Shown here piece after piece: positions 30,608 through 46,233 of a stretch of DNA of 64,000 nt; positions within the stretch are counted from its first letter, which is position 1; each line of letters starts with the position of its first letter. The stretch is taken from positions 124,001 to 188,000 of the IMG/VR virus record IMGVR_UViG_3300035665_000001; one strand, written 5' to 3'. A program made the translations under genes and the position numbers. The notes under the pieces were generated by a model. It did no database searches. It saw only the letters and a program-made list of their open reading frames with translations, and was not told where the DNA came from.

Positions 30608-31135
30608 TTAAATTGGTGATCTATTGATGAAACTATGAATCTTATATGAAATTATATTTGTGATGAATCCTACGGTTTCAACAAACAAATAATGGGAATC
30701 AATCGTTTCATCGGATACTAATTTATTTAGATTTTTAATTTTTTGTGAACACAAATCCATATCATCTAAGGCAACTACTTTATATCCATCATTAAGTAAA
30801 TTAATAATGTCGTTAAATCTGCAACCTGACGATAAACCAATTATTCGATTACCGATACCATCACTGATAGTTTGAAAAGCTTCATATTCATCTTTTTGAT
30901 TTTTGTGTGAAATTTTTCGATTATATGCTAGACAATTTGTTACTTCGTCAATTTTCAAAATTGAATACCACGATGATGTTATGAACACACCCATATTATA
31001 CTTTTCCAACATCATTGATATTCTTTTCATGTTTAACTGTAACAAATGTAATGAATCATCAACTTGTCCAAAACAAGTATAGTCGGATGGAAGGATACAA
31101 TCATCTATATCTAAGCACAAAATATGTTGGTACAT
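30608..31135 (-). CDS. HAD-superfamily protein (RNA-repair-associated HAD-like)
   Basis: LCLDIDD, FITSSW, VALDD motifs. Confidence 0.7.
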   Translation of the reverse strand: MYQHILCLDIDDCILPSDYTCFGQVDDSLHLLQLNMKRISMMLEKYNMGVFITSSWYSILKIDEVTNCLAYNRKISHKNQKDEYEAFQTISDGIGNRIIGLSSGCRFNDIINLLNDGYKVVALDDMDLCSQKIKNLNKLVSDETIDSHYLFVETVGFITNIISYKIHSFINRSPI

Positions 31136-35018: not shown

Positions 35019-35591
35019 CTACATAAGTCTCAAACCCTTATTGAATGAGTTTTTACCTTTTAAATTGTTGATGATTGTTTTTGGTGATTTTTGTGGTTTT
35101 TCACTGTTGTCATCATTATCTGTTGTGGAGTCGTTATATTGTGAATCATTATTTTCTTTGTTTTTAGTGAGTTTAGTATATTCTTTTTGTTTTGAATTTG
35201 CCCTTACATCAGTATAAGCATTTTTATCGTGTGATACCGTTTCTTCTCCATTTTCATTTGTAGTTGGGATAAATGATAATGTTCCCCAATCAGTTTTAAA
35301 AAAAACATATGAACCAACACCGGATGAATCTCTGGTTTTTAATAATTTTGCTCTAATAATTCCTGAATCTCTTGATGCTGAATTTGGGATGAACGCTAAT
35401 ACATTATCAGCACTTTGAATTTTTGCGATACCACCTTGAATATTTTCTTCTGAAATATCATTGGTATCACCACTAGCACTATTATGGGTAAGTATGTCAT
35501 TAGTAAAAAATAAGTGATCACCATCAACAGTAATATCTCTGGTTTTTCTAATACCAATTTTTTGAATATTTACGATTTCATCCAATACCAT
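35019..35591 (-). CDS. Split-intein IntC (37 aa) fused to the C-terminal extein of a T4 gp41/DnaB-like helicase
   Basis: MVLDEIV.I..IG...T.DITVDGDHLFFTNDILTHN|S resembles gp41-type IntC; extein has ISEENIQGG..KIQSAD and KLLKTR; own RBS and TGTATAAT. Confidence 0.85.
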   Translation of the reverse strand: MVLDEIVNIQKIGIRKTRDITVDGDHLFFTNDILTHNSASGDTNDISEENIQGGIAKIQSADNVLAFIPNSASRDSGIIRAKLLKTRDSSGVGSYVFFKTDWGTLSFIPTTNENGEETVSHDKNAYTDVRANSKQKEYTKLTKNKENNDSQYNDSTTDNDDNSEKPQKSPKTIINNLKGKNSFNKGLRLM

Positions 35592-35675
35592 TATTTCTCC
35601 CAATTAAATTGATTTAGTTGTTTTTAAGAATTATACAATAGTTTTACTTGTAATGATATTAGAAATATGATGCTA

Positions 35676-35736
35676 TGAGAGTTCATTTACCAATGCTCTG
35701 CAGAAATGCCACGTCTTGTAGGGTGGGGTGGTTCAC
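35676..35736 (+). mobile_element. TnpB/IS605-type right-end remnant inside a hairpin
   Basis: GAAATGCCACGTCTTGTAGGGTGGGGTGGTTCAC flanked by a perfect 15-bp inverted repeat (35658-35672 / 35739-35753). Confidence 0.5.
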
Positions 35737-35762
35737 AACATCATATTTCTAATGTAATGGTG

Positions 35763-36863
35763 TTAAGTGTTATTCTGATTGACTTGTGATATTTCTTGAA
35801 GACCAACTTTTTTAATTTCTTCAAAACATTTTTCAAACGCTTCTACTATAGTAGGATCAAATTGTGTTCCTGCACCTGCTATGATAATTTCTTTTGCCTC
35901 GTCAAAACTTACTTTTTCTCGGTATGGTCTTTTTGAAATTAAAGCCTCTAAAGTATCAATTATGTGAATTAATCTTGCAGATATTGGTATTTCAAATCCA
36001 CTCAATCCTTCTGGATACCCTGTTCCATCCCATTTCTCATGATGATAATGTGCCATTTCAATCGCAGTATCAATGTATGTAGTTACTTCTGGTTTCATCA
36101 ATAGTTCGTCTTTAACAAATTCTAATGCAACACATCCCAATCGTGTATGTTCCTGCATGATATGATTTTCATTTTCTGTATATTTATCCCTTTTTAAGAG
36201 TGTATTGTCTCGAATACCTACCATACCTATGTCATATAATGTCGCAGATAAACAGATATGTTCAACAAATTCAGATGTTAAATCATAAATATATTCTTTA
36301 TTTTTAGTAAGCTGATTGACTAAAATTTTAATATACTCTTTTATGAGTGAACTATGTTCAAATGCATTAGCGTGGTTAAATTTTGTCAAGTATGACACCG
36401 CCAATAATACTACATCGGTAAATTTATTATAATCCGTTTGAAATCGATTATTGTCATTCTCTAATTTCACAATGTATTCTTGTAATTCTTTTATTTTTGT
36501 GTTTGCTTTTATCTGATTGTTGACCCTAGCTAAAAAAATCAATGGTGTAATTGGTTTACGCATATAATCTACTGCACCTAATTCAAATCCTCGAAATTCA
36601 TCGGAAATATCATCTAATTCAGATATAAAAATTACGGGTGTGTTTTTATATCTGGAATCGTTTTTCAACAGTTCAAACATATCATACCCAGTTTCAAAAG
36701 GCATGATTACATCTATTACAAAAAGTGATATGTTATTAGCTACGGATATTATTTTTTTTGCTGATTTAACAGAGCTTGCAGTTTTAACTTTGTAAAATGG
36801 TTTTAAAATTCCACGAATGGTATCGACACTTTCACCATCATCATCGATTATCAATATAGTCAT
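35763..36863 (-). CDS. Response regulator REC + HD-GYP (RpfG-like) with degenerate catalytic site
   Basis: ILIIDDD, IDVIMP..TGY, GAVDYMRKP; LYDIGM replaces LHDIGK; HHEKWDGTGYP, RPYR, G.QFDP intact. Confidence 0.9.
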   Translation of the reverse strand: MTILIIDDDGESVDTIRGILKPFYKVKTASSVKSAKKIISVANNISLFVIDVIMPFETGYDMFELLKNDSRYKNTPVIFISELDDISDEFRGFELGAVDYMRKPITPLIFLARVNNQIKANTKIKELQEYIVKLENDNNRFQTDYNKFTDVVLLAVSYLTKFNHANAFEHSSLIKEYIKILVNQLTKNKEYIYDLTSEFVEHICLSATLYDIGMVGIRDNTLLKRDKYTENENHIMQEHTRLGCVALEFVKDELLMKPEVTTYIDTAIEMAHYHHEKWDGTGYPEGLSGFEIPISARLIHIIDTLEALISKRPYREKVSFDEAKEIIIAGAGTQFDPTIVEAFEKCFEEIKKVGLQEISQVNQNNT

Positions 36864-38907: not shown

Positions 38908-39990
38908 TTACACTATTTTCGTTTTATTTTCGAAGATATACTGAATTTCATCAAATTCATCAAAATTTGGTAGTTCAAAGTTTTTTACCTGGTTTGAAAT
39001 AATATTATACTCTAATTTTTTATGATCTCGGTTATTTAAATTTTGAGTTATTTGTTTTTCACCAATTAAGAAAACCACAGCCTTATGATTATACTGTGTG
39101 GTTGGTATTTTAATAAGTTTATTCAAGCGATGTTCCTTAGTTAAATTTGTCATATCAACTAAAATGTTTTCTTTGTTTTTTACTGCATTTAGTAAATCTT
39201 TTAAACTCTGGTCGTGAGCTTTTTTAATATTTTTTTTATAATCGACAGAATCGTATCCCATTTTTTTATTATAAAAAAAGTTGTCAACTGATATTATACT
39301 ATAATTTGAAAAATCTGAATTGTTTTTGACAAACGTTGATTTTCCACTACCAGATAACCCAATTAAAAATACAGCATCCAATTTTCTTTTTTCCCTAAAC
39401 TGTTGTTTATTATATGGGATATAGTTTTCTAAATGAGTGAACTGGTTGTCAATAAATACCAGCTCATCATTAAAATCGGGTGAAATTTCTCTACCGTACG
39501 CATCAGCCTTAACAAAATCAATAAGTTCTTTTAAAAATTCCGGTTGGTGTCCATAACATAAATCCAAATTTTTTATTTTTTCCTCAATAGGAATTTTGTT
39601 CCAAAGAGTACCGTGTCTAGCAATTAATTGCAATGTTAATAAAAAATCGATTTCAAATTCTGTTGAGGCATGTTTTAGAATATCTATACTTTTGACCATT
39701 GATACGTTTTCATGGTCATAAAACGCTACTCGCCCGTTCTCTTTTTCATATCTTACATAAACTTTACCGATATCATGCAGTATTGCCGCAAAAATATGGT
39801 TATTATTATTTAATGCTAAATCCAATACCATTTCAGTATGACACCATACAGTTCCTTCAAAATGAAAAGGATTTTTACTACCATTACTATGTGTATGATC
39901 ACATAATACCATAGCATTGTATAATTCAACATAATTGGTTTTAAACCAATTCACAATTTTTTGTTTTTCAACTGTCATTAGATTAGCCAT
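38908..39990 (-). CDS. HD-domain phosphohydrolase fused to a P-loop (polynucleotide-kinase-like) domain
   Basis: H.EG.VW.HT.MV, LHDIGK, F..HE..S, AD..GR; GLSGSGKST, VDMTNL. Confidence 0.85.
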   Translation of the reverse strand: MANLMTVEKQKIVNWFKTNYVELYNAMVLCDHTHSNGSKNPFHFEGTVWCHTEMVLDLALNNNNHIFAAILHDIGKVYVRYEKENGRVAFYDHENVSMVKSIDILKHASTEFEIDFLLTLQLIARHGTLWNKIPIEEKIKNLDLCYGHQPEFLKELIDFVKADAYGREISPDFNDELVFIDNQFTHLENYIPYNKQQFREKRKLDAVFLIGLSGSGKSTFVKNNSDFSNYSIISVDNFFYNKKMGYDSVDYKKNIKKAHDQSLKDLLNAVKNKENILVDMTNLTKEHRLNKLIKIPTTQYNHKAVVFLIGEKQITQNLNNRDHKKLEYNIISNQVKNFELPNFDEFDEIQYIFENKTKIV

Positions 39991-45357: not shown

Positions 45358-46110
45358 TTATTGGTATTCATCCCCATAGTACAAATCCTGAATATCGATT
45401 TCTCTGATTTCACCTGTTTTTTTGTTTCTAATAGTAATCTGTGTTTTACCATCCAGACAGTAAACAAATTTTAGCGATTTACCCCTAGCTGCGTTCGCAG
45501 TTGTAGCTTCCGCAATGATACGCATACCATTATCAAATTCTACCGAGGTTTCATTGTTCTTAATCATCCCAGGTTTTAACCAGTTTGGAGCAGAATAATA
45601 CATATCTTTTATTCGCTTCAATACTTCAACAGAATGTGCTTGTTTGTGAGCAACAATTAAAATATCCCCTTTTGCTACAGGAAAACATGCTTCATAAAGT
45701 AAATAAAAAGCACCAATGGTTGTATTATGACTGAGAATGCCATTCGTATAATATCGATGATCTTCACTTTCTACCGAAAGGTCATACATAGGTGTTGATT
45801 CGATTGTTTTCTTTACAGAAATTATTTTTTCTAATCCATCTTCTGTTACAATGAAATCATCAACGGTTAAATCTTTTACAAAAATTGAATTGTAATTACT
45901 ATCAAAAACAATATGATTATCTGCACATTCCAATATGTGATTTTCAGTAATCACTTCCCATACACAATAATCAACGGTCTTATTACTACCAATTATTTTT
46001 TGAAATCCCGTGTCTGTATTTACTGACCACCCATCAACTAAAAGTTGTTCAATAAATTTTTGTTTTTCATTCATACTGTATCCATTAAGTTTTTCACAAT
46101 TCAAAATCAT
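45358..46110 (-). CDS. terL: Terminase large subunit piece 2: IntC - ATPase extein (88 aa) - IntN
   Basis: ECADNH, MYDLSV...YYTNGILSHN|TT; extein AHK, NETSVEFDNG.RI.A.AT...A.RGKS; then CLDGKTQITIRNKKTGEI..IDI.DLY*. Confidence 0.9.
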   Translation of the reverse strand: MILNCEKLNGYSMNEKQKFIEQLLVDGWSVNTDTGFQKIIGSNKTVDYCVWEVITENHILECADNHIVFDSNYNSIFVKDLTVDDFIVTEDGLEKIISVKKTIESTPMYDLSVESEDHRYYTNGILSHNTTIGAFYLLYEACFPVAKGDILIVAHKQAHSVEVLKRIKDMYYSAPNWLKPGMIKNNETSVEFDNGMRIIAEATTANAARGKSLKFVYCLDGKTQITIRNKKTGEIREIDIQDLYYGDEYQ

Positions 46111-46233
46111 CGATTATTTCTAATTATACAATTGGTTGTGAAATAATTACAAAAACAGTCAAATTTTTTTGATGATTAGCTATCAAATATCTATACCACA
46201 TCGGTAAAAGTTTGATGACTTATGGTTGGGGTT

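Follow-up and report, generated by a model that had tools for sequence, protein, structure and literature searches.

A DnaB/gp41-type helicase probably made as three polypeptides and joined by two different split inteins in a phage genome

The window analysed here, a 64,000-nt stretch corresponding to bases 124001-188000 of the linear 306,333-bp IMG/VR virus record IMGVR_UViG_3300035665_000001 (G000; 30% G+C), carries on its minus strand at 35019..35591 a gene, here called piece C, for a C-terminal split-intein fragment (IntC) followed by the last part of a superfamily 4 (SF4) helicase. In the original prediction, made from the sequence of the window, piece C was described as an orphan with its own promoter, which raises the question of where the rest of the helicase is encoded. 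We consider piece C, with a probability of about 0.87, to be the last part of a replicative helicase of DnaB/gp41 type (SF4), which this freshwater jumbo phage would make as three polypeptides with two different split inteins. Its orphan look is a product of the incomplete record: the term holds for the window and for the record as deposited, and fails for the phage, where two further pieces, N1 and M, are found beyond the record's right end.

Helicase pieces in the record and beyond its right end

The piece C coding sequence (190 aa and stop; identical to database protein P0002) opens with an IntC of 37 aa (MVLDEIVNIQKIGIRKTRDITVDGDHLFFTNDILTHN; 35481..35591, minus strand; residues MVLDEI...DILTHN), followed by Ser+1. 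Its counterpart in 6qaz, the solved structure of the gp41-1 intein, is the stretch of residues 92-128 (E=3.6e-5), and DnaB and DnaX mini-inteins match more weakly at their C-terminal ends. The predicted 37-aa IntC ending THN/S (splice junctions are marked by a slash) was thus exact, and it is a conventional one of the gp41-1 class with a His-Asn end. The C-extein (153 aa, Ser+1 first; 35022..35480, minus strand) contains motif H4 GGIAKIQSADNV and an arginine finger (K-T-R) within LLKTRDSSGVG, followed by a low-complexity tail with a conserved basic motif at its end. Using tblastn, it matched the C-terminal ends of DnaB-like helicases from jumbo phages including PA5oct and Phosso (E 2e-8 to 3e-7), and it is 44% identical to residues 345-412 of the PA5oct helicase, in agreement with the SF4 C-terminal motifs that had been predicted.

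Sequence past the right end of the record was taken from ENA contig ERZ28008831:k141_410798 (227,833 bp), which shares with G000 the final gene of the record. Over the whole 11,849-bp overlap the two are 100% identical, and the G+C content of 30% is the same. The contig was read for 36.9 kb past the end of G000, none of which matches the record, and the total inspected was 343 kb. Logan contigs from two other runs back the first stretch past the end, and the extension genes are present on several other contigs too.

Both missing pieces lie in this extension, on the strand corresponding to the plus strand of G000. Piece N1 (245 aa; L050 7775-8512, starting 24.3 kb past the right end) consists of what is probably the N-domain up to the P-loop (...LAKSGGGK), then a 23-aa, Cys-initiated N-terminal intein fragment (IntN), giving the junction GGGK/CVFHDTLVTIKVSKDLYNRLLEA, and it aligns to the PA5oct helicase with E=1.5e-18. 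Piece M (394 aa, P0306; L050 10378-11562, starting 26.9 kb past the right end) has three parts. A 152-aa IntC ending GLIHHN/S (Pfam Intein_splicing, 42.4 bits at a cut-off of 35.8) is followed by a 148-aa extein that runs from the P-loop Ser (GK-S) via Walker B to ...SADQYNR, scores 28.8 bits on Pfam DnaB_C (cut-off 27) and matches the solved T4-type helicase chains 8due and 8dtp (residues 202-358, E=2e-8). The third part is a 94-aa IntN (CIAFGETVET...VSGRHIFP...), with Cys first and the block B His (SGRH). It scores 57.5 bits on a gp41-1-like IntN profile, shares 44% identity with the P0088 IntN, and matches 6qaz at residues 10-89 (E=1.5e-7), complementary to residues 92-128 covered by the IntC of piece C. 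The JGI protein P0307 shows 100% identity to M across 94% of its length. An endonuclease-like gene lies between N1 and M, and a Vsr-like endonuclease gene directly follows M (L050 11559-13085); the later open reading frames are not helicase. Piece C is located about 174 kb from N1 and M, on the opposite strand.

The three exteins tile the PA5oct helicase with neither gap nor overlap (N1 16-193, M 194-343 and C from 345, residue 345 being aligned to the third residue of the C-extein), and the SF4 motifs are spread over them accordingly, with GGGK/S divided between N1 and M, VVDYAG and ADQYNR in M, and GGIAKIQSADNV and KTR in C. The N1/M junction fits an atypical split intein, with an IntN of Cys plus 22 aa and a nearly complete 152-aa intein on M. 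A helicase N-piece with a Cys-initiated IntN, which the original prediction proposed to look for elsewhere in the genome, was therefore found in piece M. Its picture of a helicase split by an intein and lacking one N-piece stood as to the split and had to be revised as to the form, there being three pieces instead of two and a second, atypical intein that cuts the P-loop. The opposite outcome, no IntN partner together with an intact helicase, was not observed: the partner exists, and neither an intact helicase nor any DnaB-like extein besides those of N1, M and C was found in the 343 kb inspected.

A complex predicted for the IntN of M (P0306 296-394) with the IntC of piece C (P0002 1-48) scored 0.77, compared to 0.01 for the best of three controls; 51 of 78 solved complexes and 2 of 108 mismatched pairs came up to the mark. 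The runs shared at least 93% of contacts, partner pLDDT (predicted local distance difference test) was at least 75, and all 37 IntC residues were in the interface. Because the gp41-1 structure is already solved, this result reads as likeness only; such a model would indicate resemblance to a known complex and is not proof of binding.

Stand-alone piece C was found as 27 clusters in a collection of 5.8 billion proteins. The HN/S junction and the IntC are kept in 22 of 22 full-length relatives, at 45-60% overall identity to the query, and the Arg of K-T-R is invariant in the 27 relatives. Five contigs of relatives were inspected; piece C always stands alone there, in partly syntenic surroundings and with no helicase N-part within 10 kb. 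Piece M has about 60 relatives, all ending in ADQYNR followed by a Cys- or Ser-initiated IntN. Roughly two dozen of these (390-415 aa) have the long IntC in common and represent the three-piece form, and about 35 (460-495 aa) are N1 and M fused, with an unbroken GGGKSIGL P-loop, that is, a two-piece form. From these sequences the M/C split appears to be clade-wide and the P-loop split confined to part of the clade, and for that reason the latter looks like a later addition.

In the mechanism that we propose, each intein half would meet its own partner, form a HINT fold and perform protein trans-splicing, by which N1, M and C would be ligated into one helicase of ~523 aa. The ligated form would be the one able to assemble a hexamer with complete ATP sites. 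The helicase, and phage replication with it, should depend on both ligations, because N1-M alone would be without motif H4 and without the arginine finger needed to complete the ATP site of the neighbouring subunit. Cross-reaction of the two pairs should be prevented by their difference in architecture (23+152 aa vs 94+37 aa). N1 and M lie together, each followed by a homing-endonuclease-like gene as in a 'fractured gene', and piece C would have been relocated ~174 kb away to the other strand, behind a promoter-like element of its own. Splicing, splicing order and the dependence of replication are all inferred from sequence.

Points against and alternative readings

Several points weigh against a three-piece helicase. 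N1 reaches 16.9 bits on the Pfam DnaB N-domain PF00772, below the cut-off of 23, and piece C alone matches no Pfam or PHROG family. The complex score may reflect memory of the solved gp41-1 structure and does not discriminate among family members. No RNA run contains the locus. N1 and M are on one contig and C on another, the link between them being made through the 11.8-kb identical overlap. Finally, ~110 kb of the ENA contig and the left-end join lie outside the sequence inspected, and an additional intact helicase is possible there.

The last point bears on the reading that piece C is a stranded, functionless relic of a fractured gene, with unwinding carried out by another intact phage helicase or by a host helicase. 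Piece C does stand by itself, both in the 306-kb record and in the contigs of all relatives, ~110 kb of contig are outside the stretch read, and other helicase-like genes are present in the phage, namely a two-piece SF2 helicase and a PhoH/PIN protein. However, the splicing residues and helicase motifs are all kept in the 22 relatives despite their identity of only 45-60%; matching N1 and M exist, are equally conserved and would be useless without piece C, having neither motif H4 nor arginine finger; and no other DnaB-like extein was seen in the inspected sequence. A relic is therefore regarded as extremely improbable. The pieces could also associate through their intein halves without splicing, giving a non-covalent helicase of three chains in which the inteins serve as dimerisation tags. 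This draws on splicing being inferred only, and on some relatives of M (P0320 and P0357), which have Ser1 in place of Cys1; retained inteins would then sit at the P-loop and beside motif H4. Ser1 is, on the other hand, a functional nucleophile in known inteins, and this phage has each of the residues Cys1, block B His (SGRH), penultimate His, terminal Asn and Ser+1. An intein of 152 aa in the P-loop, or of 131 aa between H3 and H4, would most likely obstruct the ATP site, and gp41-1, the homologue with a solved structure, ranks with the fastest inteins in trans-splicing (10.1101/546465). We consider a helicase held together in this way very unlikely.

The remaining alternative concerns the partner: the IntC of piece C might pair with another IntN, such as that of the RecA-like middle piece, the ribonucleotide reductase (RNR) or a GyrA-like piece, or might be promiscuous. 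At least five further Cys-initiated long IntNs are encoded, and the complex test is blind to differences between family members. Each of these IntNs, however, has its own IntC-bearing continuation (the RNR pieces, the RecA C piece at G000 243880-244611 and a GyrA-like piece of 417 aa). Only M ends at the helicase residue preceding the first extein residue of piece C, and only its IntN is of the gp41-1 class, as judged from the P0088 and 6qaz matches given above. Pairing with a different IntN is thus hardly to be expected, and M remains the favoured partner in the three-piece helicase.

The relatives of M just mentioned, P0320 (...QYNR/SLVLNSK) and P0357 (...QYNR/SIFIGEK), have Ser for Cys at IntN position 1 and may, on sequence, be naturally cysteine-less variants of this split intein. 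In one relative of piece C, L007 (ena:ERZ27280233:k141_4871303), the gene is broken by two tandem group I introns at 1383-1651 and 1691-1983 (Rfam RF00028, 56.9 and 61 bits, gathering score 50), directly behind the IntC and the opening residues of the extein. These introns account for the members P0025-P0027 of the family, which look 'truncated', and the helicase of that phage is interrupted at the protein and RNA level alike.

The piece C gene and the search of the record

Piece C is part of an open frame at 35019..35603 (minus strand) that begins with TTG. The true start is almost certainly the ATG at 35591, as indicated by the M-[ILV]-LDEIV with which all 22 full-length relatives open and by the length of 190 aa in the database gene call. 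A ribosome-binding site, GGGAGA, can be read directly 4 nt upstream of the ATG (35596..35601, minus strand), and a promoter-like extended -10 element, TTGTATAAT, is located 38 nt upstream of it (35630..35638, minus strand). The 9-mer occurs 12 times in the window, compared to 3.9 +/- 1.8 expected, and 12 copies were reached in 0 of 100 shuffles; sites include 4274, 5643, 33257, 35630, 44031 and 46123. Half of the 12 copies are placed 12-84 nt before start codons, four of them, including that of piece C, at 33-38 nt, and the copy ahead of a terminase piece is 12 nt before an in-frame ATG. The start codon of N1 is also preceded by TTGTATAAT at 38 nt (L050 7729-7737), as is that of piece C. From its enrichment and placement, the element is probably the main -10 promoter element of the phage. 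With an enriched element and a GGGAGA upstream of the gene, the claim of an own promoter is plausible, as is an independent transcription unit, the element itself being promoter-like only.

Between TTGTATAAT and the stop codon of the upstream gene lies a long hairpin with a 21-bp stem (35658..35753, minus strand; fold energy -30.6 kcal/mol, z=-4.8), as stable as none of 200 shuffles. It occurs once in the genome, is absent from relatives, and its loop is richer in G+C than the 30% of the genome. The hairpin may be a terminator or insulator that sets piece C apart as its own transcription unit; a regulatory role, or an origin as the scar of the relocation of the gene, is conceivable as well. 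No tRNA was found in the spacer upstream of piece C. In the product of the upstream gene (window 35763-36863, minus strand) a response-regulator receiver domain is joined to an HD domain of the HD-GYP type (HD_5). Such a signalling protein is unusual in a phage; the gene is kept beside piece C in the relative L008.

The original prediction stated that no N-terminal partner was present in the 64 kb, which is true and extends to the whole record. Six-frame searches of all 306 kb were made with the PA5oct and Phosso helicases, three PA5oct-like N-pieces, the contiguous relative L038, and IntN and IntC profiles built from the record's own inteins. No helicase N-terminal partner was found in the window or in the 306,333 bp, the matches being limited to piece C and to inteins that belong to other genes. 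Searches of G000 with DnaB_C, phrog_19 (helicase) and phrog_47 (primase) returned no candidates and are uninformative, as piece C itself was missed.

Several candidates were set aside. A Walker A-containing open reading frame at window 38908-39990 (minus strand, 360 aa) was rejected as helicase N-part, being an N-terminal HD-like phosphohydrolase domain joined to a C-terminal P-loop kinase (GLSGSGKS); by eye the protein resembles an RNA-repair polynucleotide kinase/phosphatase. A weak tblastn match at window 30608-31135 was at chance level (E=2.2) and by eye is HAD-type phosphatase-like (DIDD motif). The IntN at G000 242575-242832, the only long one in the record without prior assignment, forms the end of the middle piece of a RecA/UvsX-like protein, and this middle piece has a C piece of its own at 243880-244611. 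The record IMGVR_UViG_3300035188_001312, considered as an additional source, is the same phage (equal to G000 35265-176019) and added nothing new.

Wider searches were performed with the IntN profile against 1.84 billion representatives, in which 1786 proteins matched; the best of these were mostly helicase N-pieces ending Q-x-N-R/C. Split helicase N-pieces thus seem to be common, and the profile gave no pairing for this clade. A degenerate DNA pattern for Q-x-N-R-C-L-x-L-D-T was found in 8 viral contigs, none with the partner, one of them being the contiguous relative L038.

The relative G002 (290 kb, ~55% protein identity) was read whole; C is the sole helicase piece there, and N1, M and a cognate IntN are all absent. 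Its genes include those for split pieces of DNA polymerase B, for primase, ligase and clamp loader, and for a topoisomerase II N-piece, none of which is in G000. Because G002 encodes these replication genes, G000 appears to be a record short of a replication module and not a phage devoid of them. The topoisomerase II halves of G002 are 117 kb apart, from which scattered split halves seem to be normal in this clade. CheckV estimated G000 to be 85% complete, which may be too high because the ENA contig has 147 kb past the right end. The left end (G000 1-320) is a tandem repeat coding for (GQQ)n, the C-terminus of a protein, where every assembly of the phage breaks; other assemblies break also near 35.25 kb and 176 kb. 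The runs containing the locus are lake-water and freshwater metagenomes.

Related systems and other split genes

The nearest known systems are the gp41 helicase genes that Dassa et al. 2009 (PMC2677866) described as 'fractured' in marine and freshwater metagenomes, and the naturally split gp41-1 intein (structure 6qaz, 10.1101/546465). The helicase described here agrees with both in host family, insertion in the region between H3 (Q-x-N/T-R) and H4, an IntN of ~90 aa with an IntC of 37 aa, Cys1 and HN/S. The statement in the original prediction that gp41-type split inteins are known in this helicase region is likewise correct, the site being after Q-x-N-R as in the phage gp41 split inteins (PMC2677866). 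The junction is NR/C, three residues before the TRSGY/C of gp41-1, and relatives show both. As in the fractured genes, a Vsr-like endonuclease gene directly follows the IntN-bearing piece, here M; in those, however, the C half is a few hundred bases after the endonuclease gene, whereas here it is ~174 kb off, on the opposite strand and behind a promoter-like element of its own. The helicase gene of this phage also has a second cut, which lies in the P-loop. The arrangement of N half, endonuclease and C half in one locus is accordingly absent at M/C and present at N1/M (L050 7775-11562). It is also seen in locus L032, where an N-piece and a 426-aa Vsr-like endonuclease gene precede a C-piece beginning ...DVLTHN/SS.

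PA5oct-like N-pieces from metagenomes (P0064, P0088 and P0120) end SQLNR/CL.LDT with an IntN of ~90 aa. L038 encodes a contiguous helicase with a one-piece mini-intein at the identical site, ending GILTHN/SA, and is 51% identical to the C-piece of G002 over 112 aa covering IntC and extein. L038 and the contiguous PA5oct- and Phosso-like helicases, together with the intein-bearing P0197 and P0241, are the full-length helicases closest to the three exteins, whose identity to PA5oct is 27-44%. In all of these, by contrast, the helicase is one gene beside the primase gene.

Similarity to the split DnaE of cyanobacteria (Ssp/Npu) consists of an essential replication protein, distant loci and trans-splicing, broken dnaE genes being known from separate loci (Dassa 2009, PMC2677866). 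DnaE differs in being the Pol III alpha subunit, with another insertion site and intein lineage, in being cellular and in having two pieces, not three. At N1/M the likeness is to AceL-TerL and GOS-TerL, which also combine a very short IntN (25 and 37 aa, compared to 23 aa here) with a long IntC; the host here is a helicase P-loop and not a terminase, and the junction lies outside the window, on the partner piece. The IntN of N1 ends DLYNRLLEA, presumably like that of AceL-TerL. The architecture of short IntN and long IntC is rare in nature (Thiel et al. 2014 as reviewed in PMC11766414). In sum of these comparisons, the intein class and the site are known; what is new is the arrangement in three dispersed pieces, in a genome with some dozen split inteins.

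Other genes of the phage are split as well. Terminase large-subunit pieces are found at window 45361-46113 (minus), G000 200204-201526 (minus) and G000 230001-230795 (plus); each opens with a long IntC (~100-130 aa; SHN/T, THN/C or SKN/C) and two end in a short Cys-initiated IntN. It would seem that atypical split inteins, spread over 60 kb, divide the terminase into several pieces. A RecA/UvsX-like recombinase consists of at least three pieces (G000 241513-242853 and 243880-244611, both plus); its middle piece has a long IntC in the P-loop (...SSHN/SGKS) and a 93-aa IntN after ...KPKGGQ, and the C piece, with a short IntC, is 1 kb downstream. RNR is encoded by three adjacent pieces (G000 106990-110465, plus). 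A GyrB-like topoisomerase II C piece (G000 117459-118694, plus) has no N piece in the record, and a GyrA-like subunit (L046 10001-11833) and an SF2 helicase (ResIII / Helicase_C; L050 4514-6378, minus) are each in two adjacent pieces. With the two of the helicase, the split inteins of this one phage genome would number roughly a dozen.

It is conceivable, although we hold this to be doubtful, that the phage has a dozen or so mutually orthogonal split inteins of at least two architectures, cutting the helicase (twice), the RecA-like protein, RNR, the terminase, both topoisomerase II subunits and the SF2 helicase, and that scattered pieces under separate promoters form a control layer, in which the helicase would become active only after expression of the distant piece C, equipped with a promoter of its own and an upstream hairpin, and two ordered trans-splicing reactions. 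Split inteins of phage gp41 helicases are textbook tools. If splicing takes place as proposed, the present case would be a natural three-fragment ligation, in which an essential replication enzyme of a viral genome is encoded by three genes with two architecturally different split inteins, the last piece being ~174 kb off; and about a dozen split inteins coexisting in one cytoplasm without cross-reaction would be candidate orthogonal ligation tags. The locus further indicates that a fractured gene can lose its linkage, and raises the question of whether such dispersal is neutral or times the assembly of the replisome. For annotation it carries a warning, as piece C has no Pfam or PHROG match and the deposited record seems helicase-free.

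At the right end of the record (G000 297483-305996) and past it (L043 and L046), genes for QueC, two DUF5591 proteins and at least three paralogous proteins of 450-560 aa were noted. The paralogs have no Pfam match on record and by eye are tRNA-guanine transglycosylase/DpdA-like (HxHLLG motif). This gene content suggests a 7-deazaguanine modification of the phage DNA.

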